38,311 nt of DNA. Source: Octopus bimaculoides. Taxonomy: Eukaryota. Where the stretch lies: the NCBI RefSeq assembly GCF_001194135.2, contig NC_068994.1:13093278-13131588 (forward strand). Direction: 5' to 3'. Position 1 is the first letter of the stretch; each line of letters starts with the position of its first letter. Below, in pieces: positions 1 to 19,443 of the stretch. The notes beneath the pieces are model-generated. The model did no database searches and was not told the origin of the DNA. It saw only the letters and a list, made by a program, of their open reading frames with translations. Both the position numbers and the translations under genes were made by a program.

Positions 1-18
1 CGTTAAATGATGATAGTG

Positions 19-389
19 GTTGTTGTTGGCACTTCGTCGCTTATGAAGTCGAGGGTTCCAATTGATCCGATCAACGGAACAGCCTGCTCGTGAAATTAAC
101 GTGCAAGTGGCTGAGCACTCCACAGACACGTGTACCCTTAACGTAGTTCTCAGGGATATTCAGCGTGACACAGTGTGACAAGGCTGGCCCCTTTGAATTA
201 CAGGCACAACAGAAACAGGCAGTAAGAGCGAGAGAAAGTTGGGGTGAAAGAGTACAGCAGGGTTCGCCACCATCCCCTGCCGGAGCCTCATGGAGCTTTT
301 AGGTGTTTTTGTTCAATAAACACTCAACGCCCGGTCTAGGTATCGAAACCGCGAGTCCGCTGCCCTAATCACTGGGCCATTGCGCCTCC
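19..389 (-). mobile_element. tRNA-derived SINE, family A (near full length)
   Basis: Minus strand begins GGAGGCGCAATGGCCCAGTG (A-box-like), has a GGTTTCGATACC B-box-like segment and a (CAA)n tail. Homologous copies at 13035, 16464, 21470 and 36105. Confidence 0.85.
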
Positions 390-424
390 ACTGATGATAG
401 TATTGGTGATGATATACGTACAGA

Positions 425-522
425 TACGATGTGGTATCAAAAAGTTCCTGGACTAATTAAGTTTAATAAGTTTTAACATCATCTCCTTCGAAATAGTCCC
501 CTTGCCCAACAATACACCACTG
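425..522 (-). mobile_element. mariner-family transposon 3' end remnant
   Basis: Minus strand of 478-522 translates QWCIVGQGDYFEGDD, a typical mariner transposase C-terminus. It lies next to a TA-starting TIR-like end TACGATGTGGTATCAAAAAGTTCCTGGACT at 425. Confidence 0.65.
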
Positions 523-689
523 TCTCTCCCTCACTCACTTTCAAGCATCAGTTGCGTTTGAATGAAAATAGTGTTGAAAAATATTAATTCGACATACGAC
601 CTGTCAGTCAGAATGGAACTCGGTTGTAAGTCATGGGAAAGGTGTAATAGTAGCTACCTGGCAATTATCTTCGGTACAGTTTCCATCTA

Positions 690-820
690 TTCAGTTTTAC
701 TTACAAAGTACAGATCAACCCAAGACCATAGGAAATGACATTTGCCCAACATGCTGCACAGCAGGATTGAACCAGCAACCACGTGGTTACAATGCAAACT
801 TCTAAACCACATAGCCTTGC
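690..820 (-). mobile_element. diverged tRNA-derived SINE head, family D
   Basis: Reverse complement resembles the GGCTGTGTGGTAAG...GGTTC...CCCACTGC head seen at 15917 and 32243. Confidence 0.45.
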
Positions 821-949
821 TCATAGGAAATTATTTATATTCATAAAATTACTTGTTCTACCAAAGAGAAAAAAACAATTTGATTAACAAATATGAAGGA
901 CTTTATTTAGCAATTTCAATTTTGACATTGATTCTGTTATTTCTCTGAA

Positions 950-1140
950 TATGTTTATTTATAGTGAATTCTTGGAGAGAATGGCTTTTACTACATATAT
1001 CACACTGATATGGTCTCTCTCCTGTGTGAATACATTTATGTATAGTTATGTAATATGTTTGGCAGGAAGATTCACCATTGATTTCATACTGATATGGTTT
1101 CTCTCCTGTGTGAATACATTTATGTATAATTATGTAATAA
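950..1140 (-). pseudogene. C2H2 zinc-finger relic truncated by an RTE insertion
   Basis: Translates YYITIHKCIHTGEKPYQYEINGESSCQTYYITIHKCIHTGERPYQCDICSKS. It has an 84-bp internal repeat (1004/1088), has lost Cys/His ligands, and abuts RTE sequence at about 1147. Confidence 0.75.
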
Positions 1141-1146
1141 GTTTGA

Positions 1147-1950
1147 TGGAAGTAGGGATTAGAATCGAAGGGCCTTAGAGTCAACATAGCTAAAACCAAA
1201 GTCCTAATAAGTAGGAAAGCAGACAGACCACAAACCTCTTCAGGTAGATGGCCCTGCTCGATCTGTAGAAAAGGCGAAGGTAGAAACTCCATAAGATGTA
1301 CCCAGTGTAAGTTATGGACACATAAGAGGAGCAGCAATATCAAAGGAAGGCTAACTGGGAAGATAGTTTTTGTATGTGGCAGATGCTCAGGAGCAATAAA
1401 CACTGAAAATGTGCAGAGAACAACTTCTGCCACATTCCAGGGAGAAAAACTAGTAGTTGATTGCTTCCATTAGCTAGGTGACCAAGTCAGTAGCGGGGGA
1501 AGGTGCGCTGAAAGTATAGCTGCTAGAATAAGAATAGCCTGGGCAAAGTTCGGAGAGTTCCTACCTCTGCTGGTGACAAAGGGCCTCTCATCCGAGCGTG
1601 ATCATGGCCAGGGCTGCTGCATGGCCTCCGTGCCGGTGGCACATAAAAAGCACCATTGAAGCGTGATCATTACCAGCGTCACCTTACTGGCACTTGTCGG
1701 TGGTACGTGGAAAACACCTTTTGAGCGTGGCCATTGCCAGTACCACCTGACTGGCCCTCGGGCTGGTGGCATGTAAAAGCACCCACTACATTCTCGGAAT
1801 GGTTGACATTAGGAAGGGCATCCAGCTGTAGAAACTCTGCCAGATCAGATTGGAGCCTGGTGCAGCCATCTGGCTCACTAGTCCCCAGTCGAACTGTCCA
1901 ACCCATGCCAGCATGGAAAGCGGACGTTAAGCGATGATGATGATGATGAT
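1147..1950 (+). mobile_element. RTE-clade LINE fragment (end of RT, Cys-rich insert, 3' end with (GAT)n tail)
   Basis: WK*GLESKGLRVNIAKTKVLISRK...WPCSICRKG...CTQCKLWTHK...ARIRIAWAKFGEFLPLL, with stops and frameshift. 3' end GGAAAGCGGACGTTAAGCGATGATGATG. Confidence 0.85.
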
Positions 1951-2861
1951 ATGTTGATATAATTTCACTCCCCCGTTTTAGAGCTAAAAATTAGTAAGAT
2001 ACGTCAGTAATTTATTTTAAATAATTCTATACAAACTTTGATACAAAATAATTTGTTTGAATTTCATAAATTTTCATAGTAATTGTTGCTCAATTTCTGA
2101 AATAAATTTGATGTAATTGAAATATTTTTGTATTTAATTTCAGCTCAACCAGTTTTGTTCTCTCCTATCATGAACGGATCTAATAACAAGTTATCTGGAA
2201 GGTGAGAGTCACTGTGTCTTTTCCACAATCACATTGAAATTAAAATCACAAATCTATCATTATTTTAATAGGAAAGGATTTATCAACACAGCTATTAATA
2301 AATTTGAAATTCATGGATTTATTTTTTATATATGCAATCATAAAAGTTTTATTTTTTGCTGGAAAAAAAAACAAACTGCAGTAATTAGTAACTAACAATG
2401 ATCCTAAAGCTAGAATATAAAATAGAGATAATTCTTAATTGCACTCCCAACCCTGAGTTTTATTCAAACACCCCCACATTAGAAGGGGCCTGTCTTAAAA
2501 AACCACAACCGGACAAAGTGAAATACCCATAGGTACATCATGTATTACATAGAAAAACTATCTCTATATGATATATAAAGAGAAAAAACATCAATATTTA
2601 TATACCAGACATTTCCTTTTCAGCTATAAATGAAGGTAGATAACTATCAATATATGAGAGGATATGAAAACTGTCTCTACAACAATGGAAGGCGTTTGGG
2701 GAGGAGCTTAGATACACAGCAACAACAAATGAACATTTCAAAGTTTATCTTTATTTCAAAAGTTAATTTCTAAGAAGGAACCAATTCAGGAATGGAATCT
2801 CTTATGTGGTAGATAGATTTGCTAGAATTAGTAGCCAAATCCTCTTTGATTCAATTATCAC

Positions 2862-3095
2862 CTTATAGAAGAACACATTGGACAATGTGATTCTGGGTTC
2901 CCTACATAAAGACAGGAGGGTCCTGGCTGGAAGGCATTTGATCAAGAGCTTCTCTGAGTGTTTTCAGTGTTTGTCTCTCTTGATCAGAACTTGTGTACCA
3001 TGTGTACAGCATCTGGAAGCTCTGTTCTTAAATGTTTTAAGTGTTGTCACACTTGATATTTTCCAGTTGGACATTTTTGATTTCTAAATTCCTCC
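2862..3095 (-). pseudogene. death-domain-encoding exon with in-frame stops
   Basis: Acceptor TTTCTTATTGTTTTATGTTTTGCAG ends at 3096. Translation RNLEIKNVQLENIKCDNT*NI*EQSFQMLYTWYTSSDQERQTLKTLREALDQMP fits the death-domain pattern (I..I..dn...EQ..QML..W...T...L..AL). TAA stops at 3037-3039 and 3028-3030. Confidence 0.7.
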
Positions 3096-3822
3096 CTGCA
3101 AAACATAAAACAATAAGAAATAATTTCAAAATCATTAACGATTACATAAAAGATGTGTACTGTAGGTTGTCATAAATATAACAAATAAACTATGTCAATA
3201 GAGGAATGCGAAATAGTTAAGAAACATAAAAAAATAAAAGGCATTGTTCTCTGTTTCTAAGAATGTTAATTAAAAATAACAAAGCGGTGGAAAAGCAAGG
3301 TGAAAATGGTGAAGATTTTAAAGAAAAATCAATTGAAAATTACACTTGCAAGAATTTATGGTAAACAGATGGTAGAAGTTTTTGTTCTCTGTTTCTAAGA
3401 ATGTTAGTTAAATATCAGGTCATATCATAAGCTCTGTCCGATTTTACCTTTTTTAAAATTGCAATGGGGGTGAAAACCCAGTTACGAACAAATTTGAGGA
3501 CACACAATTTATACCTCTGTACAAAGGTTGACAGACACAAACTGTCTTTCTGATGTTGTAGTTAATACAAAAACAACATTACAAGGAATATATGTAAAAC
3601 TACTCCCTCCCCCACAACTACTCTACCACATTTGTCACTAATGATAATTGAGATCAACTAATTGAAAATGCCTCTACAATGTTTTATAAATTACATCTAA
3701 TTAGTGTTGGTGAAAATGGCTGGGTCAAGTTTCTGTCACTCATTGTGTAACACTAATGTTATTTCCTATTTTTCCATTGAATATCTTATTGATAACTTAT
3801 TAGTCGTTAATATTTGTTAAAA

Positions 3823-4195
3823 ATGTCTCCAAAGAAATAGATTCCTGAAGCTTAAATGTCTCAAATCATTGCATTATCAAGTGAAGGATTCTCTCAAGTA
3901 GAAATTGTAAGATAATTGAAAATGCTTGAGAAAAGATTTCCATCAAAAGGTACAATGAGAGAAATTCTTTCAAAAATTGTAAAGGACGAGGTCGCAAAAC
4001 GTGTACAACCACAAGGGAAGACAGGTTGCTGAAGAGGACATCACTGGTGGATAGGAAAAACACCTCTTTTGACATAGCTGTTGAGTTTTGGTTGGCAACA
4101 AACAAAGACATATCAACTCACACATTGAGAAGAAGGTTATTAGAAGCTGGATTCAAAGGATGTAAGGCCAAAAAGATGCTGTTACGGTCTGAGGG
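3823..4195 (+). mobile_element. Tc1-family transposase N-terminal (HTH) remnant
   Basis: IKRYNERNSFKNCKGRGRKTCTTTREDRLLKRTSLVDRK...STHTLRRRLLEAGFKGCKAKK matches the Tc1 GRPR/RRRL pattern; stops and frameshift upstream. Confidence 0.8.
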
Positions 4196-4885
4196 GAACA
4201 ATGAACAAGTGTTATATAGACATAAGATTTAGGATGGGGAGAAGTGTTAATGTGGATTATAAGGACCCCAATACATGACTGGTATTGTATTTTATCAGCC
4301 TAGCAAAGATGGAAGGACAAAGTGACCTTAGCAGGATCAGAACTCTGAACATAAAGGGTGGTAAAGAAATACCACAAGGTATTCCATCCAACAGTAATCA
4401 GACACAGGAAGAGGAGAAAAGAGGGGGGACAATTTATTAAATAAACCCCTGGATATTACTGGTACAGATTTTGACCCCAGGTTGTTAATAGATACTCTGG
4501 GAGGATTTGAACTTGGAACATAAACAGATCAAAGTAAGGGGATGATTTTACATTTAGTCCAGGGCCAGAGGAAAGAAGAAAATTACAAGATGGGTGGGTG
4601 GGGAGTGAGGTGTTTTACATGGAATGAATGGAAGAAGAGGGAGGATTTGAACCTGCAACGTTGAGGTAACGAAGGATGGGATGAAATAAAGAATCTAGTC
4701 AGGTAACAACAACAACAATAATTATGATGATTAATAAATGAAGTTAGATTACAGTGTCATTAGAGTGAGAGAGAGAGAGTTGAAGCACGACGACCCATGG
4801 TGGGATTATGACATGAATAACTCAAAACAAGAAAGCAAACATTAAAGAAACAGATTTGGATAATCCAAATCCATTGGGGACTTAC

Positions 4886-5070
4886 TTTTGAACTGCCAGA
4901 CGTAGAGGTCATTCTGTTGTAGAAGTTTAACGTCTGTGCGTCCAACCATTGACGGCCACAACACTGACATCAGCAGAATTATGTTGTAGTAGTTTAACAA
5001 TGTCTGTGTGTCCCTCCTGAGAGGCAACATGTAGAGGTGTCCCACCGCCATTAATATGTCGCTGAGTAAC
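4886..5070 (-). pseudogene. ankyrin-repeat-encoding exon with frameshifting deletion
   Basis: Acceptor ...GTATCTTTTTTAG ends at 5071 and donor GTAAGT starts at 4885. Translation VTQRHINGGGTPLHVASQEGHTDIVKLLQHNSADVSVVAVNGWT, then the frame shifts to TDVKLLQQNDLYVWQFK. Confidence 0.8.
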
Positions 5071-5221
5071 CTAAAAAAGATACACAATAAAGACATTAAA
5101 GATGGTGTCCATTGGAGGTGGGAGGGGGGCAAAAATGAAAAATGTCAGAAAAAGAGAAAGATTAATAAACAGGTGGAATGAAGGTGGGGAAAAATAAATG
5201 AGGTTTATAATGTATCTATAC

Positions 5222-5400
5222 CCGCAGACACACACACACGTATGCATATTATATACATACATACACACTCTCACACATACATATATACATAAATATATAT
5301 ATATATACATGTGTTTTATATATTCACTGATCATTTGTTTATGTATTTTTGTGTATATATATGCGTTTATGTGTGTGTATATATTTGTGTATGTATGTAC
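5222..5400. repeat. compound (CA)/(TA)/(TG) microsatellite tract
   Basis: Directly visible dinucleotide runs. Confidence 0.85.
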
Positions 5401-5778
5401 AGGTCTGCGTGAGCTGAAGAAAATTTTTAATTAAAAAAATATAAACTGTCGAACAAATAATTTCAATTTTGTGAGATCATCTCCGAAAGATCACCCGTTT
5501 TTTCAATGAAATTTAATAGAAATCCACATTTTTCAATGTTGTATCAAACAATTATGTCTGGATTGTGGGAAAGAAAGTGAAAAAGTGTATGTTGAGGGTG
5601 GAAGGGTATCGATCTACAACTCATCAAAAATATTTATTTATTACCATAATCATTATCTACACAAGGAAATGAGCAACTTTTATTTAAAAAATATGAGGAA
5701 ACAAAATTTGGGGCACTAAATTGTATGTATATATCATATACATATAACACACACATATATAACATACATACACAAATG

Positions 5779-5859
5779 GGCATATTCATTAAAAAATATT
5801 CATTTTTCTGAAAGTTATGACCTCCCAAAGTCTGGGGGGTAAAACCCTGTAGTTATGCC
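5779..5859. mobile_element. 81-bp Merlin-type mini element (degenerate)
   Basis: Ends GGCATATT...GTTATGCC, with flanks CACAAATG / CACAAGGG (6/8 match). The right 32 bp are nearly identical to 9724-9755. Confidence 0.5.
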
Positions 5860-5949
5860 CACAAGGGTACATATCTTTATACAAAGATATATATATATAT
5901 ACATATATTCGCTAACCTGTAAAATGTTATTTCCTTTCTTTTTTAACAG

Positions 5950-6009
5950 GACTTTGACTACATCTTTATAAGTTCTTCTCCACAGCCTGACGTAGAGCTG
6001 TGTTGCCCT
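5950..6009 (+). other. candidate 60-nt exon of unknown gene
   Basis: GCTAAC branch-point-like motif at 5911, pyrimidine tract, AACAG acceptor and GTGAGT donor at 6010. Open in phase 0 (DFDYIFISSSPQPDVELCCP). Confidence 0.4.
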
Positions 6010-6575
6010 GTGAGTCCTACTTATTAACATTTGTTCGCCTGGAGACTAGGGAGGCCACGGCGTCAATTTGATGGCTGAAAGGAAAAAAATAAACATAAAA
6101 CATCACAGACATTCACTTAATAATTACATTAAATATACAATCGTGTTCCATTAAACGCATAAAAACTATGTATAGTACAGCCTCGTGAGTGTGTGTGTGT
6201 GTGTGTGTGTGTGCTACAATTTTGTTCCTGCTAACTTTTTGTTTCTCTCAGTTTCTTTGTTTTATGTTTGTTGACGATTTTATGATCAGATCAGATCGAT
6301 TTTATGATCAGTACGTTTTAATTAATTTTGTTTGGTTTATATGATTTATTTTGAAATGTATTATCGAAATACAGGCCACACCCTCACATGCCAACTTCAA
6401 AAGATTTTTCCTGATCACATCACGCTCTCTCTATCTCTTTCGTTTTTACGCCGACTTCAAAAAGACATCCTTTTCCTCCAACTCCATATGTAAAAAATAA
6501 ATATATTTTTTACGGAAATCGCCGATGTTATTCAGAAAAGTAATTAAACACACCTTGCTTGAAACACTATAAGGT

Positions 6576-6706
6576 CGCCATTAATCAGTACGCACGCGCA
6601 CAACGACCGGAAGTTATGGGATCTATAAACGAGAGACCGCCTTTAATCAGTAAGCATGCGCACAACGACCGGAAGTTATGGGATCTAGTACCGAAAGCCC
6701 GCCATT
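6576..6706. promoter_or_regulatory. 62-bp tandem repeat (2 copies plus start of third) with YY1-, NRF1- and ETS-like motifs
   Basis: CGCC(A/T)TTAATCAGTA(C/A)GCA(C/T)GCGCACAACGACCGGAAGTTATGGGATCTA starts at 6576 and 6638, and CGCCATT recurs at 6700. Located about 320 bp upstream of the transposase ATG. Confidence 0.55.
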
Positions 6707-6827
6707 CAATTCTTGTTAGTTTGAATTAGGAAGCCCTTGGATGCAGAAGGTTGGAAATTACTATCTTTCTCTCTGTCTTCAATTTTCATTGCAGAGAATT
6801 TTGAAAGGAATCTTAAATTTTATTTTC

Positions 6828-6970
6828 ATTTTGCACACACACACACGCCTGTACACACAAGCACAGACAGAATTTTACACACACACACGCCTGTACACAA
6901 GCAAAAACACAGACTCACAAGCAGAAACACACACACACACATATCTGGCAACAGACTCTCCTGTACATTG
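6828..6970. repeat. CA-rich degenerate tandem repeat (CACACACACGCCTGTACACA units)
   Basis: Two near-identical units plus a partial CCTGTACA unit upstream of the transposase ORF. Confidence 0.7.
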
Positions 6971-7018
6971 TCTCACAATTCCTAAGACACATCATATACT
7001 CTTCCATTCGATCCCACT

Positions 7019-7939
7019 ATGGCTAGACGATATAGGATTGTTGAATCTGTCCTTTCCGTTGATGACATAACTGAAAGACATCACAATCTGCGAGAAATAA
7101 TTGCCATAACGGGTAACGCGGATTCAACAAACCAATTCCTGGCGTCTGTGGGATTGATCCACAATTCCATGGAATGCTGTAATCAGCGGATGTTCCTTGC
7201 AACGCGCAATACAGTATCCGATGGGAAAATGTGGAGGTGTCCTGTTTGCAGGCAATTTCGTAGCATCAGGCGAGACTCGTTTTTCTCGGACTCCCATCTA
7301 CCATTGACTCGTCTCCTAGAGTTGATGTATTACTGGGCCAGAATTGAATGCAAACAGAGTGTTGTGATGAGCGAAGTTGGAATTGGCCCAGAAGCAATTG
7401 TCAAATGGTACAATTACTTTCGCGATGTTTGTGCCATGTGGTGCTTTGACCACCCTGTGCAACTTGGAGGAGAGGACGTCGTTGTAGAGCTCCTCGAATC
7501 CAAGTTTATGCACAGGAAACATCATCGTGGAAGTTATCGAGAGGGGCATTGGGTTCTTGGACTGGTCGAGCAGGAAAGTCTGAAAAGTGTCTTAGTTCCT
7601 GTGGAAAACACAAGTGCAGCAACACTGTTGCCCATTATTACTCGCCACGTTTTGCCAGGAACTAAGATCATCACAGACTCCTGGGCAGCGTATAACAGTC
7701 TTCCAGACGATTTCACTGTCAACCACAATGTCACCTTCGTCGATCCCAACGATGCCTCAGTCAGCAAAAACACCGTGGAAGGGATTTGGAGTCAAATGAA
7801 AGCAAATTATCGGAGGATGCATGGGACGTCCGATAGTTTGTTTTCGACATATTTGCATGAATTTTGTTGGCGACGTCACAACACTAGTAATACTTTTATG
7901 AGCTTCATAAAATGTATTAGACAGTATTATCTTGTCTGA
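7019..7939 (+). CDS. Merlin / IS1595 (ISXO2-like) DDE transposase-family protein, first catalytic Asp replaced by Leu
   Basis: Uninterrupted 306 aa. N-terminal zinc ribbon (ECCNQ...WRCPVC), GG..VVVELLESKF..RK.HRG...WVLGLVE, TLLPII...V.PGT.IITDSW.AY, VNH..TFVDP, NTVEGIW, YL.EF.WR. Confidence 0.9.
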   Translation: MARRYRIVESVLSVDDITERHHNLREIIAITGNADSTNQFLASVGLIHNSMECCNQRMFLATRNTVSDGKMWRCPVCRQFRSIRRDSFFSDSHLPLTRLLELMYYWARIECKQSVVMSEVGIGPEAIVKWYNYFRDVCAMWCFDHPVQLGGEDVVVELLESKFMHRKHHRGSYREGHWVLGLVEQESLKSVLVPVENTSAATLLPIITRHVLPGTKIITDSWAAYNSLPDDFTVNHNVTFVDPNDASVSKNTVEGIWSQMKANYRRMHGTSDSLFSTYLHEFCWRRHNTSNTFMSFIKCIRQYYLV

Positions 7940-9712
7940 TTTCAAAAATATGTTTTATGAAGTTCATAAAATGTGTTCTGGTGTTTAATTTAGCCTCAAA
8001 TTCATGGGAATCTGTGTAACTTTATATTTATCATTATTTATTTTCTTTTGTATCTTTGTAATTTGTATTTCTTTCTTCTACACACGGAAATAACCCGTGT
8101 AAGCAAAATTTGGTCTAATGTTTAATTTTTAAATTGTTTTGTTTTTAATTGGTAATCATTACATGGAGAGTTTCACCAGATTTAAAAAAAGAACAAACAA
8201 AAAACAAATTGCTACCACACAATTAATAACATTTCCATTTCCTTCCTTCTCTGGAATTTGCATCCACAATTTTCAAAAACAGAAGGGCATTTTACAGAAA
8301 TAAGAGAAATGGTTAGAACGAACTTATACATATGTAGTGACTTCATTTGGACATAGATTAAATTCGAACAGTGGATCTACACGGACACCAGACGAAAACA
8401 ATAGCAATCACGGTGGTATACCTCTTTTTCTACAGTCGGCCGAAATCAAGAAGTGACAATGCCACCTTCACATTCTCTATTGTCAGCATCAGGCATTACC
8501 TACTCTTTCTCTCTCTACTGACAGCAGAACACATCTCGCTGTCGACTACAACCAGCAAAGCAAAGCTTTATTACACACCACATGGTACACGGCTAGACGG
8601 CTACAACTGGTGTCAGACCGACCACAACGATACAACGATGTGTCTAGAACGTGATTCGAACACAACAACTCTGCCACAATTGCTGACTCCTGAGCTACAG
8701 AATTGCAGTCTCCGTTACCTTATCCATTACATTTGGTGAGCTCGACTTCAAAGTTACTGCTTCAGCATCGCATGACCTCTTGAAAAAAAAATTACAGTCC
8801 ATGCCAGTCGCATCAACAAGAATTACACAACACGAAAGGCAGGAAGTCACCGACTCAATGGACACACACCAATTACTTTCCATATCGCAGACCAATGTAC
8901 TACAGTCCGATGCACAGATCCACTAGGGAAACAGTTGCCATACGTAAATGCAACATTTAGAACAGCTATCCACCCAAGAGAACTAACCATTTCTCACTTT
9001 TCAGCATAGACCTTTCACAGGACACTATTACCAACCAGGTTTTGTCACTTTGTACTGTCCATTCATTTTGCTGCACAGCACAATGTTTACACATGCATAT
9101 ATGCATGTTTGCACCCAGTTTCTGTGCACAGCTGTAGACTCTTAACTTTTTTTCTTCTTTTGCATGCAACTCTTTTCTCATGAGAAGGATATCTCCTCCT
9201 CACTTTATATCTCTCCCGTCTTTTACTATTTCACCATCGTCGCATCAACAGACATTATTCTATGATGCGGCCAGAATGATGAGAACAGGACAAGTAAAAA
9301 AATTAAGGCTGCACGGTAGCAGTCGAGAAAGAAAATGTAACGGTTAAATAAAAAAAAATTTGTCTATAACTTCGACCACTGTCATTATTCCATTGAGTCA
9401 ACTTCATTTTCTACATAAACATACATGCAAACAACAAGCAAAAACATACCTTCTCTCTGTCTCTCTACCTCTCTTACACGCACATATATACGGGTACTAC
9501 TAAAGAAAGTGGTCGCGCGTCCGCGCTAGCTAGTCGTGAGTAGTCGATCTTACAAGTGCGCGTATGCAAATTAGTACACACTACCTGTTTTTGTTAACTT
9601 CATGCATTATATATATGTCATAATTACGTTATGATATCACTATACAATGCCCCTTGAAAAGCTAATTTAAATAGCGAAAACCGGTTGGATTTTACAACAC
9701 CCATATAATATG

Positions 9713-9755
9713 GGCATAACCTGAAGTCTGGCGGGTAAAACCCTGTAGTTATGCC
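9713..9755. mobile_element. 43-bp Merlin-type mini element with perfect 8-bp TSD
   Basis: GGCATAAC (9713-9720) and GTTATGCC (9748-9755) are exact inverted repeats. ATAATATG is at both 9705-9712 and 9756-9763. Confidence 0.75.
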
Positions 9756-10331
9756 ATAATATGTATATATTTATATAAAAAAATATTAAACTATGTGAAA
9801 CGAAGGCATTTTTCTTCTTTCTTTACATATCTTCAACTCGTAATTTTACCATGTGTTGTTTACTGAATCTCCAGTATTTTTGCTCTTTATATTTCTATAT
9901 ATATATATATATATTTATATATGTATGTATGTACAGGCAAACCTACACAATAGTGCCCACCAACGAATGTTTCCTTGTAAGTTATAGTAAAAAACGGATA
10001 TTTTTGAATGAAATTTCTTTCACAAATATACTTCAGATGGCAAACGTTCCAATTCTATCGGAATTTGTTGTAAGAAAAAATTTTCGATGGGTGGAGAGAG
10101 AGAAATTTGGTAAAGTTCACCCGAGTCAGCTTTCTTTCCAAAAACAAATAGATATTTTCAATAAAACTATTTCAGATGGTGAAGATTCTTCATATATCAG
10201 AATTTAATATAATTTTAAAAATTGGTGGATTCACACAGATATACACTGATACATCAGAAAATAAAAAGATGAACTTTGGAAATATAACCGTGACGTGTGT
10301 CAGTATTTGTGTGCAAAACCATCAAATATTT

Positions 10332-10539
10332 AAAGTTCGCGCGTCCGGCCTAGCTAGTCGTGAGTGGTCGATCCTATTATTTTTAAACTTCAAACTTCAT
10401 TTGTTTTCTATTTTGATAAATTCTCTCTGTTGAAAATTATATTTTTATATTTTAAATAATTTGCAATTTCAGGAAATATGTTTTTATATTAAATTTGTGT
10501 TTTCTACTCACGACTAGCTAGCCCGGACGCGCGAACTTT
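10332..10539. mobile_element. MITE-like foldback with 36-bp inverted ends
   Basis: AAAGTTCGCGCGTCCGGCCTAGCTAGTCGTGAGTGG (10332-10367) versus the reverse complement of 10504-10539: 2 mismatches. A third, direct copy is at 9506-9549. Confidence 0.65.
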
Positions 10540-10613
10540 CGAGTAATAGATAGATAGATAGAGAGAGAGAGAGAGACAGATAGACAGACAGACATATAGC
10601 TCGCTTCGGCCAG

Positions 10614-10696
10614 TCATGGTATTAGCTGTCAGTAGCCAAAGAATCGACAGGCATGCAGGCAGAGAGCACTTTCACTTCTGACAGCTAATAGCATGA
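10614..10696. repeat. palindromic element, 22-bp arms
   Basis: TCATGGTATTAGCTGTCAGTAG versus CTTCTGACAGCTAATAGCATGA, 20/22 complementary. Confidence 0.65.
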
Positions 10697-11153
10697 TAGT
10701 GCCAAAGTTGTTTCATGTTAAATTCTATAAGCTCATTTTATGCTGTAAAGTGATTAGTAAAGACAAAGCAAAAGAAAAAAAATGAGTGTATTTAACATGC
10801 TTACTGACACTGGAGAAGAAGTGTCCACTCTATATCATTTCTGCTGTCCATGATGGCTGGTGATAATGAGATTGACTTCAAGAGAGAAATCAGAGGGAGT
10901 ATTACATTATAAAATGAGATGCAGGTAGGAAGTGTTTCCACCAATGAACTGCACAGATGTGTTTGCCAACGCTCCTCTCTGATTTTATTGATAATGTTGA
11001 ATACACTAAACCTTTTATTGCAACCTGTGTAAGTTTAACATTTAACAACAAACAGTTATTCACTTATGGTCACACCCAGAGGAAAGATCCCAACATTGAC
11101 TAAATGACAGCCATGACATGGGCTCCTAAAAGAGAAAGTGTGGAAGACTAGAA

Positions 11154-11414
11154 CAGGGTTTTTCAAAATGTGGTCCGACAGGGGCTCTGTGCAGAGGCAA
11201 GCAAGCACATCCTTCTCACTAAGTGTATATTTAAAAAATCCTGTGTGTATAATTGACAATAAACCTATTTGCTAAATACTGTTAAATAAATATATGTTAT
11301 TTTAAGCAAATAGTTATGTATAAATTTCATAAACGTTTATTATAAGGGGGTGGTCCCTAAGGTAAAGCCTGAAATATAAAGGGGTCCGCAAGTCAAAAAA
11401 TTTGAAAACCCCTG
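11154..11414. mobile_element. hAT (Charlie/Buster-type) MITE, copy 1
   Basis: TIRs CAGGGTTTTTCAAA / TTTGAAAACCCCTG. Flanks GACTAGAA / CTCTAGAA (6/8, NTCTAGAN-like target). Confidence 0.85.
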
Positions 11415-11801
11415 CTCTAGAACAGCAGAAGAACTGTTGAAAATGAGGCAGGCTGGTGGATGGGGGAACATGGAACTAGATACAGATCACAGGATAGCAT
11501 GGCAAGAGAGAGAGTGGAAGCCTTATTGCATATAGCACCAAGTGGAAAGAAGAAACTATTCATTTAAAGTTAACCTATCTGTTACCAGTGTACCACATCT
11601 CTATAAAATATTTGCATTATCAAATTACTGCTGCATTGTTGAAAAAAAATTATGATTTGCATCTACAGTTTCTGAAGGGTGGATTAGTGACCATGGCCTT
11701 TACAAATCCTCTGAGACTGATGAGTTTGATATCATTACTGTTCCATTTAACTGTTACAAGTCAACCTACAAGAAGGGCATGAACAGTGAGGTGAGTTAGT
11801 G

Positions 11802-12063
11802 CAGGGGTTTTCAAACTGGTCCGCAAGGACAAGACAGGGGGTCTGTGGACAACAAATACTTTTTATGGGCAATTTGATTTTATATATGTTTTTTAATCGA
11901 AATCTTTTAATTGACAATAAACCTATTTGTTAAATGCTGTTAAATAAATAAATGCAAAAATATGTTATTTTAAGCAAATATTTATGTATAAATTTCATAA
12001 GCGTCCCTAAGGTAAAGCCTGAAATATAAAGGGTCCGCAAGTCAAAAAGTTTGAAAACCCCTG
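11802..12063. mobile_element. hAT (Charlie/Buster-type) MITE, copy 2
   Basis: TIRs CAGGGGTTTTCAAA / TTTGAAAACCCCTG with perfect TSD AGTTAGTG. Internal sequence is homologous to copy 1. Confidence 0.9.
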
Positions 12064-13034
12064 AGTTAGTGGGCAGGAAGTAAGCAGTTTTAAGCATATG
12101 ACTGACTAAAAAAACTGGCATCATTTGAGACATTGAAGAGAAAGCACTAATTTAGAAAACAGATAGAAAATCTCTTAGCTGTTACCACAAATGAAGCTGT
12201 GTTGGTGAAAGGTTGATCACCAGTTCAGTGCAGTATAGAAAAGGAAATATGAACTTGCTGCTCAATCTAATCAGTAAAAAAATGCTACTTGCTTCACAAC
12301 ACTTCTATGTTTGGAAGAGGATGGTCATATCTTGTAGAAAATGAAGACAAGTTTGGATATATAACATTAAATTAAGTTTTATTTTCCATGAACCAACAGA
12401 AGAAAATCTCAGCCAGTCTAAATGGTACAATATTTCAATAGTAGCTGAACAGCACATAGTTTCTGAGTACACATTTGAAATAGAACAGTAACTCCGGTAA
12501 AGAGTATAACAGGTTTTAATTTACAAGTTCACATAAATTATTACAAAAATGTACATATACATCTTTCTATTTAACAAAGTTCATTAATTTGTACTGTTCA
12601 AAATGTCATAAGGGAATGGAAGACAGACAAGTAAATTCTGTTCAGGTCAACCAAAAAAAAAAAGTTTTGTATTAAAACTACCCAAACAAGAGAAGTTCAA
12701 TGTACGAAGTGAATGTTCTTGTGTTCACATTTCATCTGAGTGTTATATGTTTGCCAGCAAAAGTTCATTTACCAGATATAAACAAACAAAACGGATAAAG
12801 TATGTGCTTTTTAGATTGATGGAAATAGCAACCAGCAAATGATTTTTCATTCAGCTTAATGACTTATGATTTGAAACAATAGAAAAGAGCCAATTTTGTT
12901 GTATTGCTGGGTTTTGTAGAGAACATGAGAAGAGCAGTGGCAGGGTTATTCTGTGCCATCCAGAAAAAGTCAAAATCTAACCACTAAAAGAGATGCTTTT
13001 GACTTCTGTTTCAAGGGTCAAAATGGCTGGTGGA

Positions 13035-13495
13035 TTGTTGTTGTTGGCACTCTGTCGCTTACGACATCGAGGGTTCCAGTTGATCCGATCAACAGAACAG
13101 CCTGCTCGTGAAATTAACGTGCAAGTGGCTGAGCACTCCACAGACACGTGTACCCTTAACGTAGTTCTCGGGGATATTCAGCGTGACACGGCTGACCCTT
13201 TGAATTACAGGCANNNNNNNNNNACAGACACGTGTACCCTTAACGTAGTTCTCGGGGATATTCAGCGTGACACGGCTGACCCTTTGAATTACAGGCACAA
13301 TAGAAACAAGAAGTAAGAGTGAGAGAAAGTTGTGGTGGAAGAGTACACCAGGGTTCGCCACCATCCCCTGCCGAAGCCTCATGGAGCTTTAGGTGTTTTC
13401 GCTTAATAAACACTCGCATCACCCGGTCTGGGAATCGAAACCGCGATCCTATGACCACAAGTCTGCTGCCCTAACCACTGGACCATTGCGCCTCC
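13035..13495 (-). mobile_element. tRNA-derived SINE, family A, spanning a 10-N gap
   Basis: Same head and tail as 19-389; a 74-bp segment is repeated on both sides of the Ns. Confidence 0.85.
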
Positions 13496-13613
13496 ACCGC
13501 TGGTGGGTTAAAAATGTGACAAAACAGCAGAACTAAGATATCACTTGTTGCATGAAGTAACTGCAAAAGATTATACTTGGAGATTTCCTTCCTATTTTCC
13601 AGGGTTAGGCTTT

Positions 13614-14393
13614 CTATCCAGTGTGTACTCTTTTGTGTGTTTTTAAACTACCACTTTTACTAAAATATTTGCCACATATGTCACAATGATGTGATTTTTC
13701 TCCAGTGTGTATTTTTGCATGTGCTTTTAACCGGTTATTACTGAATGATTTGCCACATATATGACAGTGATATGGTTTTTCTCCGGTGTGTACCCGTTTG
13801 TGAGATTCAAGAGAGCATTTTACAGTGAAGGAATTTCCACATATATCACAGTGATATGGTTTTTCTCCAGTGTGTGTTCTTATGTGCGACTTTAACCTGC
13901 TATTTTCAGTGAAAGTGTTTCCACATATTTCACAACTAAATGGTTTCTCCCCAGTGTGTGTTCTTATATGTCTTTTCACATTACTATTTCGGAGAAAAGA
14001 TTTCCCACATATTTCACAGTAAAATGGTCTTTCTCCACTGTGAATTTTTTCATGCCTACTTAAGTCCCCGTTAGTAATAAAAGATTTCCCACAAATGTCA
14101 CACCGATACGGTTTCTCTGCAGTGTGTGTTCTAATGTGAATTATTAAAAGACTATTACGAGCAAAAGATTTTCCACATATTTCACAGGGAAACGGTTTCT
14201 CTCCAGTATGTATTCTTTTATGTCCACATAAATCCGAATTAGTGATGAAAGATTTCCCACAAATATCACAGTGATAGGATTTTTCTTTGGTGTGTCTTCT
14301 TTGGTGTTCTTTCAAATTACTATTACGGACGAACGATTTCCCACATAATTCGCAGTAAAAGCACCTTTCTCCTGCATGTATTCCCTTGTGCAT
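13614..14393 (-). CDS. C2H2 zinc-finger protein (ZNF-1), 9 fingers
   Basis: 259 aa of CxxC...HxxxH repeats with TGEKP-type linkers; finger 8 has 11-residue C-H spacing. Confidence 0.9.
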   Translation of the reverse strand: MHKGIHAGERCFYCELCGKSFVRNSNLKEHQRRHTKEKSYHCDICGKSFITNSDLCGHKRIHTGEKPFPCEICGKSFARNSLLIIHIRTHTAEKPYRCDICGKSFITNGDLSRHEKIHSGERPFYCEICGKSFLRNSNVKRHIRTHTGEKPFSCEICGNTFTENSRLKSHIRTHTGEKPYHCDICGNSFTVKCSLESHKRVHTGEKPYHCHICGKSFSNNRLKAHAKIHTGEKSHHCDICGKYFSKSGSLKTHKRVHTG

Positions 14394-14959
14394 TTTAAAA
14401 TCCCAAATATTGACAAAAGAATTTTAAATAATTTTCGGTGATAGAGTTTTTCTTTGAGACATTTGTCTACTCGATTACTTTTCTCAAATAATGACTCCCC
14501 GTATATTTCAGTTGTTCTTCCACACTGTATTGTCTTTTATATTTTTAAATGACTATCATAATTAAAAAAGTTTCCTGATAATTTCATAGTGTTCTACCCT
14601 GGTGAATTTATAAATAAATATTGCTGACGAGGTTTTACTGTATATAGACGCTTAATGTAGCAAATGATTGTCTTAGAATTATCATCGCAAGAGACATCTC
14701 ACATATTTATTCTGTAGTTGTTTCAATACGGTTATATTTACGAAAACATAATGAAAATTGGCCTCTAAACCTAACGATAATACAAAAAGCAGATGTGATT
14801 TGCAGTTATTAAAATGTGTTTAGTTAATTATTCAAATAAAATCGACTTTGCTTTCCATGCTTCCAGAGTCAATAAAATAGGATATGATCGAATGTTACCT
14901 GTTACCTTTAGTTGAGGGTTTAAACATATATAAGAAATCAATAATTATTTAGTGAATTT

Positions 14960-15150
14960 CAAATTGAGTTGAATGGGAGTTATATTTCTTCATGACTGTT
15001 ATGTTACGTAAACAGAATGTGGAAATAATAATAAAAACCTGTGAAGACTTTTTAAAATGAGTTAAGAGTTCCGACCAAACATGCGATTGATGGATATGCG
15101 AAAATTATTGAACTGTCACAGCTGATGTTCACAAGGGAGGTCACTGTGTT
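14960..15150 (-). promoter_or_regulatory. conserved non-coding block upstream of ZNF-1
   Basis: Homologous to about 19085-19217, 24865-25025 and (inverted) 26765-26920. Confidence 0.6.
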
Positions 15151-15916
15151 AAGTAAATTAAGAAAAGAATTGTGGGAGTAGTATGTACTTTCACTTCCGC
15201 TGAAAGTGCGTGATTCTTGTTGTTGCCAGTCGAGGAGATCTAAGAAAAATATTCCTGCCATTACTATTTCCCATTTGTTTTTAAAACGAAGGCGCGATAG
15301 CTAAAGCAAATCAAAGACCTGTAGTACTGTAGTTTTCATTCATAAAAAAAAGTTCACCCATTGCCTCCCGTTGAGTACATTCCACTACGACCGGTTGTAG
15401 ATCACCATGAAACTATAGTGTTATATGAAATTAAAACGAAAATAAAACTAAAGCTGAAAAAGTGTTTGTATGTTTGTTATTGTTGCATATTAAAACTCAC
15501 AGAATCTATTAGCTGTAGTAGAATCTACTTGATGAAAGTGCGGGTGACTGCTTTAAAAATACAACTCCAGTTATACAATTTAGATAGTTTTTGGTGGCAA
15601 TGCGACAATCAAAAAACCGAATTTTTTGGTTTGTCGGACAGGGTCTGATTTTATTAAAAATTTCTACAAACGTGTAGTTTTGTATAGCAATTACAAGAAT
15701 CCCCCCCCCCCCACCAAAAAAAATCCCCAAAATTATGACCATCACAAATATAGTATAAACCCTAATCGTATATACAGAATTGAAACTTCATAAGTTATTA
15801 GTGTACATGGTAGAAGAGTGGCCTGGTGCTAACATTTAGCCATGTGTAAGATTCTCTGGACCTTCAAATGATCACACCAACTGTCTTGAAGTAACAGATC
15901 TCAAATAATACATACA

Positions 15917-16190
15917 AGTATGGCTGTGCAGTTGAGCTTTTTTTGCAAACATGGTTTCAGGTTCATTCCCACTGCATGGCATCTTATGCAAGTGACCTAG
16001 GCTGACCAATGTCTTGGAATGAGTTTGCTATATCAAACTTGTGGAAGCCCGTTATGTGTATGTCTTGTCCTCTGACTGCTTGACAAATGGTGGTGTTTTG
16101 TTAACATTTCTATAACCTAGTGGTTCAACAAAAGTGGTTGATATAAAAAGTACTGAGATTGATTAATTCAACTAAAACCCTTCAAGGTTA
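15917..16190 (+). mobile_element. diverged tRNA-derived SINE, family D
   Basis: ATGGCTGTGCAG...GGTTCATTCCCACTGCATGGCATC...GAAGCCCGTTATGTG; similar to 32243-32440. Confidence 0.55.
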
Positions 16191-16463
16191 TGCCACAGTC
16201 CTATGAATGAAACAAAAAATGAAACACTAGAAATTTCCTCTTTATGTTGGAGTGATGAAGAGAGTGAAAATACTCTAGAATGGAAGGGTTGTGCTGTGTG
16301 CAAAAAGTAAGAGGGAGGAGGGCCTCACTTATGCTTGGGAGCAGCCTGGAACACAGGTATGAATTCTTAGGAGTGGGTAATAGCACTAGGGTGGATCAAG
16401 TAATCATATTTTTGGTGAAGAAGTCATAGTATGAGTTTTGCAGTATTATTAAACTTTGACAGT

Positions 16464-16698
16464 GGAGGCGCAATGACCCAGTGGTTAGGGCAGCGGACTC
16501 GTGGTTTCGATTCCCAGACCGGGCGTTGTGAGTGTTTATTGAGCGAAAACACCTAAAAGCTCCACGAGGCTCCAGCAGGGGATGGTGGCGAACCCTGCTG
16601 TACTCTTTCACCACAACTTTCTCTCAGCCACTTGCACGTTAATTTCACGAGCAGGCTGTTCCGTTGATCGGATCAACTGGAACCCTCGACGTCATACA
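16464..16698 (+). mobile_element. SINE family A with internal deletions
   Basis: GGAGGCGCAATGACCCAGTGGTTAGGGCAGCGG head; the middle is deleted at a CTCA microhomology (CTTTCTCTCA|GCCACTTGC). Confidence 0.85.
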
Positions 16699-16959
16699 AT
16701 AACTAGAAGGGAATTCCTAGAGAATGGTTTCTGATGTAGAAACAACAAAATTTATGTGTAGTGGGTATTTTTTCTGTTGCTTATAAAAATTGAAAGAGTA
16801 ACCACTGGACAATCCTAGATATCTCACATGGCGACTAGTGTAGCTAGAGGCGGAGCAGCACCACTTATGGGTCAGCTGTAAGCAATATGTACTTTTTGCT
16901 GGGGTCTGGGGGGAAACAAACTGAAGGGCCACCCTGGGTGGCACACACTCTAGCTACAC

Positions 16960-17218
16960 TAGTGCACATGGCTTTTTCTTCAGTATGTACTCGCACAAGG
17001 GGTAGATTACTAATTTGAGAAAAAGGCTTTCCCATAGGTCTCTCAGAGACAGAATTTATCTCAAGTGTGAGTAATCTTTTGTGAATAACAAGACGAGAAC
17101 TGCTAGTGAAATGTTTTCCATACACATCATAGGGACAGAAATTCTTTATCTTTCTCCAGAGAGACTGTGCTTAAGGAATATAAAAAAATCTCGAAGTAAA
17201 GGTTCTCCTACATATTTC
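16960..17218 (-). pseudogene. decayed zinc-finger repeats 3' of ZNF-2
   Basis: After the stop: EICRRTFTS..., VYGKHFTSSSRLVIHKRL, MGKPFSQISNLPLVRVHTEEK. Confidence 0.7.
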
Positions 17219-18169
17219 TCAATTATATGCATTTTTTCCTGTATGCATTCTTTCATGTCTTTTTAATGTGCTGTTTTTATTGAAAGCTGCTCCACATATC
17301 TCACATTGATACAGTCTATCTCCAGTGTGTAGTCTTTCATGTCTTTTTAAAGAAGTGCTATGACTGAATGCTTTCCCACACACCTGACACTTAAATGGTT
17401 TTTCTCCTGTATGAATTCTTTCATGAATTTTTAAACTAGAATTTTCACTGAAAGCTTTTCCACATGTTCCGCAGTGAAAAAAGTATTCCCCAGTATGCGT
17501 CCTCGTGTGTCTTTTTAAATGGCTGCTACAGACAAAAGCCTTCCCACAAATTTTACAAGGAAACGGTTTTTCTCCGGTGTGTATTCTTCTGTGCAAATTT
17601 AAATCCGATATAGTGACAAAAGACTTCTCACACAGATCACAGTGATACGATTTTTCTTTGTTGTGTCTTTTTTTGTGTTCGTTCAAGACACAATTCTTGA
17701 CAAACGATTTTCCGCATGTCTCACAGCAATAAGGTTTCTCTCCAGTGTGTCTTTTTATATGCGTTTTTAAAGTACTGCTATCACGGAACGACTTACCACA
17801 TGCTTCACAATGATACGGCTTCTCTCCAGTGTGTGTCTTCATATGGATTTCTACGTAACTACTCCGGACAAAAGATTCCCCACATATTTCACAACGAAAT
17901 AACTTTTCTCCATGTATTTTTTTGTGATTTAGAAAACTAGAATTCATAATGAAAGACTTCCCACATACATCACAAGTATATGGTTTATCTTCACTATGAC
18001 TGCGTTTATGGAACACAAGAGAGGAATTGCTGGAGTAAAATTTCAAACATATATCACAACGAAATGGTTTTTCTCCCATGTGTATTCTTTTATGTGCGAT
18101 TAAAGTACTCTTGTCACTGAAAGATTTCCCACAAATTTCACAATGGCACGGTTTTTCCCCAGTGTGCAT
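17219..18169 (-). CDS. C2H2 zinc-finger protein (ZNF-2), 11 fingers; start codon uncertain
   Basis: 316 aa finger array. One more in-frame finger (HPCEICGTTFRFNSTLRKHKRMH) lies upstream of and overlaps the annotated Met. Confidence 0.85.
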   Translation of the reverse strand: MHTGEKPCHCEICGKSFSDKSTLIAHKRIHMGEKPFRCDICLKFYSSNSSLVFHKRSHSEDKPYTCDVCGKSFIMNSSFLNHKKIHGEKLFRCEICGESFVRSSYVEIHMKTHTGEKPYHCEACGKSFRDSSTLKTHIKRHTGEKPYCCETCGKSFVKNCVLNEHKKRHNKEKSYHCDLCEKSFVTISDLNLHRRIHTGEKPFPCKICGKAFVCSSHLKRHTRTHTGEYFFHCGTCGKAFSENSSLKIHERIHTGEKPFKCQVCGKAFSHSTSLKRHERLHTGDRLYQCEICGAAFNKNSTLKRHERMHTGKNAYN

Positions 18170-18520
18170 TCTTTTATGTTTTCTTAAGGTACTGTTAAAC
18201 CTGAAAGTTGTCCCACATATTTCACATGGATGGAATTTTTAACATCTCGTTATCACCTAAATACTTTTCCCATGCGTTTCACAGAGAGATCATCTTTCTT
18301 CGGAGTGTAACCTTTTGTGCATTTTAAAATCCCAAATTTTAACAAAAGACTTTCCATAAACATAACATTTCACAACAAAGATTAATTTTGTTTGTGAACG
18401 ACTTCTCGCATATTTTTCCATGAAAGTGTTTCTCCAGTGTATTGTTTCATAACCTTTTATATAACTGACACGAGTAAATGATTTCCACTTGATCTCATAA
18501 TTATAAGGTTCTTCTCTAAA
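18170..18520 (-). pseudogene. disrupted 5' finger repeats of ZNF-2
   Basis: From the paralogous ATG at 18322: MHKRLHSEER*SLCETHGKSI*VITRC*KFHPCEICG.... Further upstream: VYGKSFVKIWDFK and YNYEIKWKSFTRVSY. Confidence 0.7.
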
Positions 18521-19206
18521 TGAGTACAGTTCAGGTATTATTTAAACAAACGTTACTAACGAAAACTGGAGCTGTTTCAGATTCGTACGACAGAATCTGA
18601 AGAATTTACCACAAACCTCAACACAACATTCATGTATTTACCTTTTTGCTTAGTACAAGTTCCGCAGATGTTACTTCATTCTTTACTGCTAACTTTTCAT
18701 AGTTTTGTTCATCACTACCAAAATTAATAACAGTGAACAATGTACGGTAAATAAAGAAACGCATTATTCACGATGTAGATTTCAATTAGCAATCTCTGTC
18801 AGTATATATTTTAAAATATATAAATGGAATAATGTGAATTAAAGACACTAACAATAATTTAGTAAGCGTTGGACAAGATACCTTGTGGTATTTTACTGCC
18901 TTTTACGTTCCTAGTTGAAATCCAGCCGAGGTCAACATTGACCCTTTTACTTCTGGGGCGGGAACTGAAGAAAGATCGATAAAATAAATTTTAGTAAAAA
19001 TACTGATTCGAATTAATTAATATACAGTGTCCTGCTACATAGTTTGCGGTCTCGTGCTGAAGTAATTTAGTTACTGGAGGACAAAATTGAGTTAAACGTA
19101 TATCTATAGAAACCTTGTAAGACTTACAAAAATCCAACCAAACATGTGAATCGTCGTCATGTCAAATAGATGACGGGACAATAACAACGGATGTTGAGAA
19201 GGGACA

Positions 19207-19259: not shown

Positions 19260-19332
19260 GGTAATCTTCAAGTTTAGGGATTTAAAAAAAATAAATAAAA
19301 ATATTCAAGGGAAATAACTGAACGACTTACCA

Positions 19333-19438: not shown

Positions 19439-19443
19439 CTGAC

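Follow-up and report, generated by a model that had tools for sequence, protein, structure and literature searches.

An intact transposase frame that has lost a catalytic residue raises a simple question: has the host taken over the gene, or is this a dead transposon whose frame happens not to be broken yet? We addressed this question for an open reading frame (ORF) of the Merlin/IS1595 type found at positions 7019–7939 (+ strand) of a 38,311-nt stretch of the Octopus bimaculoides genome (NC_068994.1, positions 13,093,278 to 13,131,588; hereafter, the window, to which all positions refer unless a locus is named). A sequence-only reading of this DNA had proposed a candidate domesticated gene, coding for a DNA-binding or repressor protein or for a dominant-negative regulator of Merlin mobility. 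Our analysis leads us to consider it probable, though well short of certain, that the ORF is a stranded, immobilized and catalytically dead relic copy of a Merlin element, with a frame not yet broken. The ORF is real and its description was accurate; the kind of object it represents is already known.

As had been read from the letters, the ORF runs from an ATG through 306 intact codons to a TGA stop at 7937–7939, and it is covered by a single-exon gene call in GCA_001194135.2 (O. bimaculoides). The site coding the protein lies at ~13.10 Mb on O. bimaculoides CM046614.1 (the window spans ~13.09–13.13 Mb), the one contig in the searched collection to encode it. The protein matches Pfam PF12762 (DDE_Tnp_IS1595) with E = 2.5e-18 and 67 bits, above the curated cut-off of 27. 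This alignment, suggested earlier as a check, begins at profile position 25, past the first-Asp motif, which stays outside the match. The NCBIfam IS1595 model, NF033547, is passed more narrowly (77 bits versus a cut-off of 75).

The zinc ribbon is kept, as claimed. Four cysteines (C53, C54, C74 and C77; 7175–7249, + strand) occupy invariant columns in an alignment of 27 sequences, and the motif that they form aligns with the CxxC...CxxC of proteins bearing PF12760. The same cysteines are invariant across octopus and other eukaryotic Merlin proteins, and align with those of the bacterial-type proteins P0061 and P0062 (PF12760, Zn_Tnp_IS1595). Pfam itself did not detect PF12760 in the window protein. 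The domain is said to be absent from Merlin elements (PMC8101967), whereas the octopus proteins carry this conserved four-cysteine motif aligning with the PF12760 zinc ribbon.

The predicted structure of the window protein (predicted local distance difference test, pLDDT, 85; predicted template modeling score, pTM, 0.81) shows a beta-beta-beta-alpha-beta core, putatively of the RNase H-like catalytic fold. Fold matches to the model in the PDB were weak (best E = 5e-3), every one of them being the core of a transposase or integrase of the Asp-Asp-Glu (DDE) type; no solved IS1595 structure was found in this comparison. Judged from its residues, the window protein belongs to the IS1595/Merlin transposase family through its descent and is not competent as an enzyme.

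The reason lies in the catalytic core. Where the family has VEIDES, the window protein reads VELLES in the 27-sequence alignment, confirming the earlier observation of a CTC codon at 7493–7495 (D159L), and the DDE triad is incomplete at this position. The other two members of the triad are retained in invariant columns, again as described: the second catalytic Asp in TDSW (codon 220, GAC, 7676–7678, + strand) and the catalytic Glu in NTVEG (codon 254, GAA, 7778–7780, + strand). Loss of the first Asp supports the view that the transposase is catalytically incompetent. The sequence-only reading had counted two base changes from an Asp codon. The Asp codon is indeed lost, but the true change involves three bases: codons 158–159 (7490–7495, + strand) are CTC CTC (Leu-Leu), versus ATC GAC/GAT (Ile-Asp) in both close relatives, i.e., three changes within five bases that replace Ile158 (I158L) together with Asp159.

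Further replacements derived in the window copy, at conserved positions, are found within 7571–7768 (+ strand), namely, R185Q (7571–7573), R198T (7610–7612), H231D (7709–7711), H249S (7763–7765) and T250K (7766–7768). Among these, R185Q, H249S and T250K affect strongly conserved family positions, while R198T accounts for the reported NTS in place of the usual (D/N)RS. As for the segment preceding VNH, its His is lost (H231D), as stated; it is not shortened, however, with respect to the close relatives (SLPDDFTVNH versus SLPNHLTVNH), and appears shorter solely in comparison with distant members that have an insertion there. On the structural model, D159 maps to the first core strand, D220 right after the fourth strand and E254 where a helix begins. 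The remaining replacements at conserved sites are predicted to lie in loops and helix ends beside the elements that hold these three residues.

Loss of the first Asp is not peculiar to this copy. The residue is missing in 7 of the 62 homologues that span the motif, six of them coming from octopus genomes or a close relative (P0006), while nearly all non-octopus homologues retain it. The site is occupied by Leu in the window protein, Ala in P0005 and P0006, Gly in P0009, and Asn in P0026 and P0042.

A living relative of the window copy is at hand for comparison. The best non-self match of the window protein, P0002, is 79% identical in amino acids and 86% in nucleotides across the whole ORF, and is coded identically at two O. 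sinensis loci and one O. vulgaris locus (L001, L002 and L003). These loci have in common a stretch of ~8.7 kb with >99% identity, set in unrelated flanks; their ORFs show zero nucleotide differences and carry VEIDES within an intact VEIDES/TDSW/NTVEG triad. The common stretch begins and ends with GGCGATGTTTCG...CGAAACTATGCC, within 354-bp inverted repeats starting 5'-GG, and a perfect 8-bp target duplication is present at each locus (GCAAATCT, GAAACTTT and CAAGGCTT).

In L001 the element occupies 4266–12996 (with counterparts in L002 and L003), its outer 354-bp inverted termini lying at 4272–4625 and 12631–12980. An inner pair of 344-bp inverted repeats (4638–4981 and 9412–9755) encloses ~5.1 kb of other repeat sequence. 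This inner segment may be a nested insertion now carried by the element; no target duplication was seen at its edges.

Merlin/IS1595 elements have been defined by terminal inverted repeats (TIRs) of 24–462 bp starting from 5'-GG and by target-site duplications (TSDs) of 8 or 9 bp (Feschotte 2004, as summarized in PMC8101967). The 5'-GG termini and 8-bp duplications of the sister element agree with this definition. By these marks the element is currently or recently mobile, and Merlin has been listed among the recently active transposable elements (TEs) of O. vulgaris (PMC13282606). According to the sequence-only reading, many near-identical, TIR-flanked copies with an intact Asp would have pointed to a recent defective copy. 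TIR-flanked copies with the Asp do exist; they are, however, 86% identical in nucleotides and located in sister species, rather than near-identical.

The sister element also suggests how the Asp was lost. The hexamer GAGGAG at 7467–7472 (+ strand) is the exact reverse complement of the CTCCTC found 18 nt downstream, and is ancestral, since the active element carries it as well. A random three-base change would generate an inverted copy of sequence within 40 nt with a probability of 0.019. Because CTCCTC is such a copy, expected by chance in just 1.9% of cases, I158L and D159L probably arose in one template-switch event, with GAGGAG as the candidate donor. If a single event changed all three bases, the argument that the codon stands two steps away from Asp lends no weight to selection.

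What the sister element has and the window copy lacks is a pair of ends. As the alignments indicate, the window copy is a ~3.4-kb transposon body without termini and is thus immobile, as there are no ends that a transposase could bind in the right geometry. Transposon-derived non-coding sequence flanks the ORF on both sides, from ~6185 to 9574. On the 5' side (6185–7018, + strand), 6896–7018 aligns with all relatives, 6737–7016 with an O. bimaculoides paralogue (L004), and 6185–6376 and 6697–6887 with a relic from O. vulgaris (L006). The extra sequence at 6377–6697 is confined to the window copy, and two tandem 62-nt units, 87% identical, lie at 6576–6699 (+ strand) in this window-specific part. 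On the 3' side (7940–9574, + strand), collinearity with the active element extends to 9417 (12442 in L001), leaving ~190 bp to the right terminus of that element, and a weak match at 9514–9574 is the last one to L006.

The sole terminus-like sequence in the window is a 38-nt scrap (6487–6524, − strand) resembling positions 33–69 of the 354-bp terminus of the active element, though not oriented as a left end should be. Apart from this scrap, the 354-bp terminus is absent from the window, and so is its 12-nt tip, even with one mismatch allowed. A search for inverted pairs between 1–7018 and 7940–25000 gave none bracketing the ORF, the matches being interspersed repeats and (TA)n microsatellites, and short ungapped inverted matches between 5800–6900 and 9200–10300 yielded no terminal repeat. 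The observation that no TIR pair directly borders the ORF therefore holds for long and short repeats alike. These short interspersed repeats, which are responsible for every long inverted match spanning the ORF and do not represent Merlin termini, have copies at 114–391, 1770–1950, 13224–13497, 16462–16626, 20596–20777 and 36105–36255, and occur in the O. sinensis and O. vulgaris loci too.

In sum, the window copy and the mobile element have in common a collinear 5' leader (~120 nt), ~1.5 kb of 3' non-coding sequence and a palindrome pair at the stop codon. They differ in that the latter has 354-bp termini, 8-bp duplications, an intact triad and the extra ~5.1-kb inner segment, whereas the former has no termini, carries D159L along with five or more further replacements at conserved sites, and belongs to a different species. 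Lacking the TIRs and the full DDE triad by which Merlin elements are defined, and with no ends from which a TSD could be recognized, the window copy should be classed as a Merlin-derived relic ORF and not as a transposon.

The palindrome, TTTTATGAnnTTCATAAAATGT, occurs at 7894–7918, inside the end of the ORF, and again at 7953–7977, after the stop (+ strand). The surrounding block (7853–8038, comprising the last 87 nt of the ORF and ~100 nt beyond) is 93–96% identical in four copies whose ORFs are otherwise ~85% identical, and the palindrome is absent from outgroup Merlin lineages. The pair is probably a cis element of this subfamily, possibly a transposase binding site or a 3'-end signal.

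Several other octopus copies are dead beyond doubt. L004 (coding for P0003) shares a chromosome with the window copy, from which it is 7 Mb distant in O. bimaculoides; it has suffered a deletion of 9 nt, a 1-nt frameshift and an insertion of 2 kb. L006 (P0026), from O. vulgaris, has four deletions and reads VEINES. Both are frameshifted, while P0019 and P0042 are internal-deletion derivatives. Like the window copy, these relics and P0009 belong to the same subfamily (L004, L006 and P0019) or to the same family, lack termini and show conserved-site replacements; the first Asp is also lost in P0026 and P0042 (to Asn) and in P0009 (to Gly). Unlike it, they bear frameshifts, in-frame or internal deletions or the 2-kb insertion, and L004 evolves with a ratio of non-synonymous to synonymous substitution rates (dN/dS) of ~1.16. 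No such lesion is seen in the window copy, which has a longer and more constrained private branch.

Although they come from different species, L004 and L006 are just 7.2% apart, each on a short private branch. The site patterns of the four copies are in conflict (12 sites grouping the window copy with L004 and the active element with L006, 8 grouping the window copy with the active element and L004 with L006, and 1 of the remaining kind). As far as such patterns can be read, this suggests that element lineages have recombined or that the copies stem from a recent source in common. Dating by a molecular clock was dropped on account of this conflict.

To describe evolution along the branch of the window copy (W), we used a three-taxon analysis that also included the active element (S) and the dead paralogue L004 (B), assigning each change to the lineage that differed. 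Branch dN/dS came to 0.32 (W), 0.33 (S) and 1.16 (B). A four-taxon analysis over the full ORF, with L006 (V) added, gave 24 synonymous and 36 non-synonymous changes private to W, corresponding to a ratio of non-synonymous to synonymous changes per site (pN/pS) of 0.40, below neutrality (p = 0.0012). Insertions and deletions (indels) were compared between 824 well-aligned columns of the transposon-derived flanks and the 918-nt ORF. In W, the flanks had accumulated 46 private substitutions and 16 private indel events versus 0 indels in the ORF, whereas the dead relic V had 14 indel events in its flanks and 4 in its ORF.

On these counts, the frame of W was protected for much of its private history. 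The pN/pS value cannot place this constraint in time relative to the stranding of the copy, as an active transposon lineage yields a like signal. Constraint is consequently no proof of domestication, since the branch of the active element itself shows a dN/dS of 0.33. The sequence-only reading had regarded a dN/dS near 1 as evidence against domestication; the value obtained is well below that, but the measure is confounded by the constraint on active lineages.

Signs of decay are nevertheless present on the same branch. When conservation was scored over 24 distant family members, replacements at positions conserved at 80% or more amounted to 5 of 23 in W (8, if three positions at 79% are included), 0 of 26 in S and 5 of 17 in B; the difference between W and S is significant (Fisher p = 0.018). 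Outgroup proteins confirmed 15 non-synonymous base changes as derived in W, and the replacements so confirmed include G3R, I158L, D159L, M182L, R185Q, C190S, R198T, N230D, H249S, T250K and P305L. The N-terminal 149 residues had undergone 7 replacements, with a pN/pS of 0.06 for residues 91–149, although these counts are very small.

Alternative accounts of the private changes were examined and rejected. Placing the root on the window branch, so that its private synonymous changes would belong to the stem of the other copies, is contradicted by five outgroup ORFs, according to which 13 of the 20 resolvable synonymous sites are derived in the window. There was no excess clustering indicative of gene conversion (7 close pairs of private changes versus 8.2 expected). 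An origin by A-to-G hyper-editing or as a retrocopy does not agree with a spectrum that is not strand-specific (10 T>C and 7 A>G) and with the retention of flanks that do not look transcribed.

The history that we propose is as follows. Along most of the branch between the window copy and its relatives, its lineage would have remained an active transposon, which would account for both the pN/pS of 0.40 and the indel-free frame. The copy would then have lost its ends and begun to decay, with D159L and I158L arising jointly, probably through one template switch from the GAGGAG located 18 nt upstream. Stops and frameshifts would have been escaped by chance, an opportunity open equally to many Merlin copies. 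The product could neither cut nor join DNA, as one of the three carboxylates that hold the metal ions is replaced by leucine. If made, it should still fold (the pLDDT of 85 is consistent with this) and could bind DNA through the zinc ribbon and the helical N-terminal region.

How likely is such a survivor? A frame that has taken 20 neutral substitutions remains free of stops with a probability of 0.42; with 30, the probability is 0.28. In O. bimaculoides, 191 Merlin-related proteins are annotated, the most in any protostome surveyed (PMC8101967). Given some 191 proteins, plus unannotated fragments, and given that this copy was chosen for its intact frame, one surviving frame is expected or nearly so.

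Several observations weigh against this history. The absence of indels from the ORF limits the unconstrained phase to <24–32% of the private branch of W (<~65% if calibrated on V), while 6–8 conserved-site replacements imply at least ~18 unconstrained non-synonymous changes. For one given copy, the rough joint probability of the decay hits and of no indels is ~0.3–0.7%, and for this reason the relic reading depends on there being many copies. The hits concern polar residues next to the catalytic motifs, whereas those in the dead paralogue fall on Gly, Pro or core residues; the former pattern would fit also a selective loss of catalysis with the fold kept.

Furthermore, the synonymous changes derived in W are biased from AT to GC (16, versus 5 from GC to AT), and we have no explanation for this. 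The corresponding figures are 18 versus 16 in the flanks and 10 versus 11 for non-synonymous changes, and outgroup DNA backs the polarity. In the dead paralogue, unlike at the synonymous sites of the window copy, decay is mostly from GC to AT. Finally, the relic reading predicts sibling copies in O. bimaculoides that carry the private changes of the window copy; no sibling >80% identical to the window protein was found among annotated proteins.

Part of this evidence would suit a young, lineage-restricted domesticated gene, whose frame was kept after stranding for a non-catalytic role, e.g., DNA binding by the zinc ribbon and the helical N-terminus, with the catalysis-specific residues released from constraint. 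The copy is immobile and its ORF intact, which domestication would explain directly; the private branch is constrained, with all of its indels outside the ORF; conserved-site replacements gather beside the catalytic motifs, and replacements of any kind are few in the N-terminal region; the fold is predicted to be intact; and the AT>GC bias is limited to synonymous sites. There is also precedent, at the level of proposals, in the Merlin ORFs without TIRs or TSDs of Stentor, Symbiodinium and Perkinsela (PMC8101967). Yet constraint arises equally in an active lineage, the domain-wise differences rest on very small counts, and the ORF is still flanked by TE sequence, ~0.8 kb on its 5' side and 1.5 kb on its 3' side. 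The same Asp is lost in dead octopus copies, a single event provides a route to D159L, and chance survivors are likely at so high a copy number. The protein is coded by a single contig of the collection, and none >80% identical to it was found in the O. vulgaris or O. sinensis proteomes, where five other Merlin ORFs are annotated. Lack of an orthologue, which the sequence-only reading had named as adverse to domestication, is in this form weak negative evidence. Overall, we regard domestication as unlikely. We take an equally skeptical view of its specific variant, in which a species- or clade-restricted Merlin copy would have been co-opted in Octopus within ~15–30 million years, as a non-catalytic DNA-binding protein, after the loss of its ends.

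Defective transposases inhibit active ones in the mariner and P elements. By analogy, the dead protein, if expressed, might bind Merlin ends or pair with active subunits and so lower mobility, in a dominant-negative manner or through competition for sites, with or without selection at the level of the host. A derivative of this type, such as the P-element KP product or defective mariner, would retain the parts for DNA binding and multimerization while lacking catalysis. The window protein has kept its putative DNA-binding parts (the zinc-ribbon cysteines and N-terminal helices) and most of its predicted fold, and has lost D159; the palindrome pair conserved at the end of the ORF is a plausible, putative shared binding site, and related elements are mobile in sister species. 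Active Merlin copies were seen, however, in O. sinensis and O. vulgaris only, not in O. bimaculoides, and expression of the window ORF, which this explanation presupposes, is putative. At ~79% identity to the active transposase, the formation of mixed multimers and the recognition of shared sites are uncertain, and nothing sets the window copy apart from other dead copies. An inhibitory role thus seems to us rather improbable.

The missing Asp might instead be apparent, due to an error in a short-read assembly affecting either CTC CTC at 7490–7495 or the intact frame. The window does contain four runs of N, and repeats are prone to collapse and to chimeric consensus. Three changes that produce a perfect inverted copy of a hexamer are nevertheless atypical of base-calling errors, the 46–52 private changes around them argue for a distinct locus rather than a collapse of known relatives, and an independently fetched record has the same sequence (a weak point, since it derives from the same assembly). 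We consider such an artefact very unlikely. Hardly any credence can be given to a working transposase in which some other acidic residue replaces D159. E157 and E160 flank the lost Asp, and the VD(I/V)AES motif of P0005 and P0006 has an Asp two residues earlier; but no acidic residue has been gained in the window protein, all family members have E157 and E160, and hardly any non-octopus homologue is without the first Asp. Several other catalytic-core positions have changed as well, and there are no termini on which the enzyme could act. Artefact and residual activity together account for a few percent in our estimate.

Stranding and chance survival of a Merlin relic, therefore, remains the reading that we favor, and comparison with published cases helps to place it. 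Domestication has been proposed for Merlin ORFs of Stentor, Symbiodinium, Perkinsela and Bodo that lack TIRs and TSDs and, in some instances, the DDE motif (PMC8101967), and genes with PF12762 in the somatic genomes of ciliates are up-regulated in development (bioRxiv 10.1101/2021.12.14.471607). Like the window copy, these have a preserved ORF, no recognizable ends and sometimes an incomplete DDE motif. They are, however, old and divergent copies, backed in Stentor by synteny between species and in ciliates by developmental up-regulation, whereas the window copy, at 86% identity to a live transposon, is young and still surrounded by TE sequence. Even so, the protist and ciliate cases are proposals, with no demonstrated function (PMC8101967; bioRxiv 10.1101/2021.12.14.471607), and no animal case of a domesticated Merlin was found in the searched literature.

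Octopus genomes contain a second Merlin lineage, represented by P0005 and P0006 and 56% identical to the window protein. In its VD(I/V)AES motif the first Asp is replaced by Ala and an Asp stands two residues earlier; TDGC is found versus TDGW, and VNH is missing, yet the frames are full, with 313 codons. The loci are L007 (10001–10942, O. vulgaris OX597825.1), L008 (10001–10942, O. sinensis CM016870.1) and L009 (1246–2187, Logan SRR11869394). A single P0005 locus is syntenic between O. vulgaris and O. sinensis, with 20 kb of aligning flanks, and comparison of P0005 with P0006, from another sample, gives a dS of 0.33 and a dN/dS of 0.29. With a shared loss followed by constraint, this lineage looks a better domestication candidate than the window ORF.

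The window copy is located within a cluster of C2H2 zinc-finger ORFs, with 6–9 fingers each, of a kind expanded in octopus: 13614–14393 (−), 17219–18169 (−), 23716–24327 (−) and 27637–28521 (+), besides a fragment at 903–1433 (−). In the annotated stretch that we examined, 17219–18169 is the only one of these to be called as a gene. As a synteny anchor, its 316-aa product was of no use, the search being swamped by vertebrate zinc-finger proteins, with no usable octopus match and without even the query's own protein being returned. Comparison with L001, L002, L003, L004 and L006 revealed no synteny, as only the element and interspersed repeats are common to them and the window. A 115-aa ORF at 19444–19791 (+) matches the hAT C-terminal dimerization domain (PF05699, E = 2.4e-6) and is what is left of a different DNA transposon, present as a fragment. 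The runs of N, representing assembly gaps, lie at 13214–13223, 20780–21010, 30878–31079 and 36541–37040, and several long ORFs listed across such runs are artefacts of translation into X.

If the window ORF had been co-opted after all, Merlin, a superfamily so far with protist candidates only, would have its first case in an animal, to judge by the literature searched; the ORF, with TE sequence still attached, would show a cephalopod in the early phase of co-opting a transposase. If it is a relic, it matters little alone, being one of many Merlin copies in an unusually Merlin-rich genome. It would then serve as a worked example: an intact frame, a dead catalytic residue and a dN/dS below 1 are not proof of domestication when an active sister lineage shows an equal ratio.

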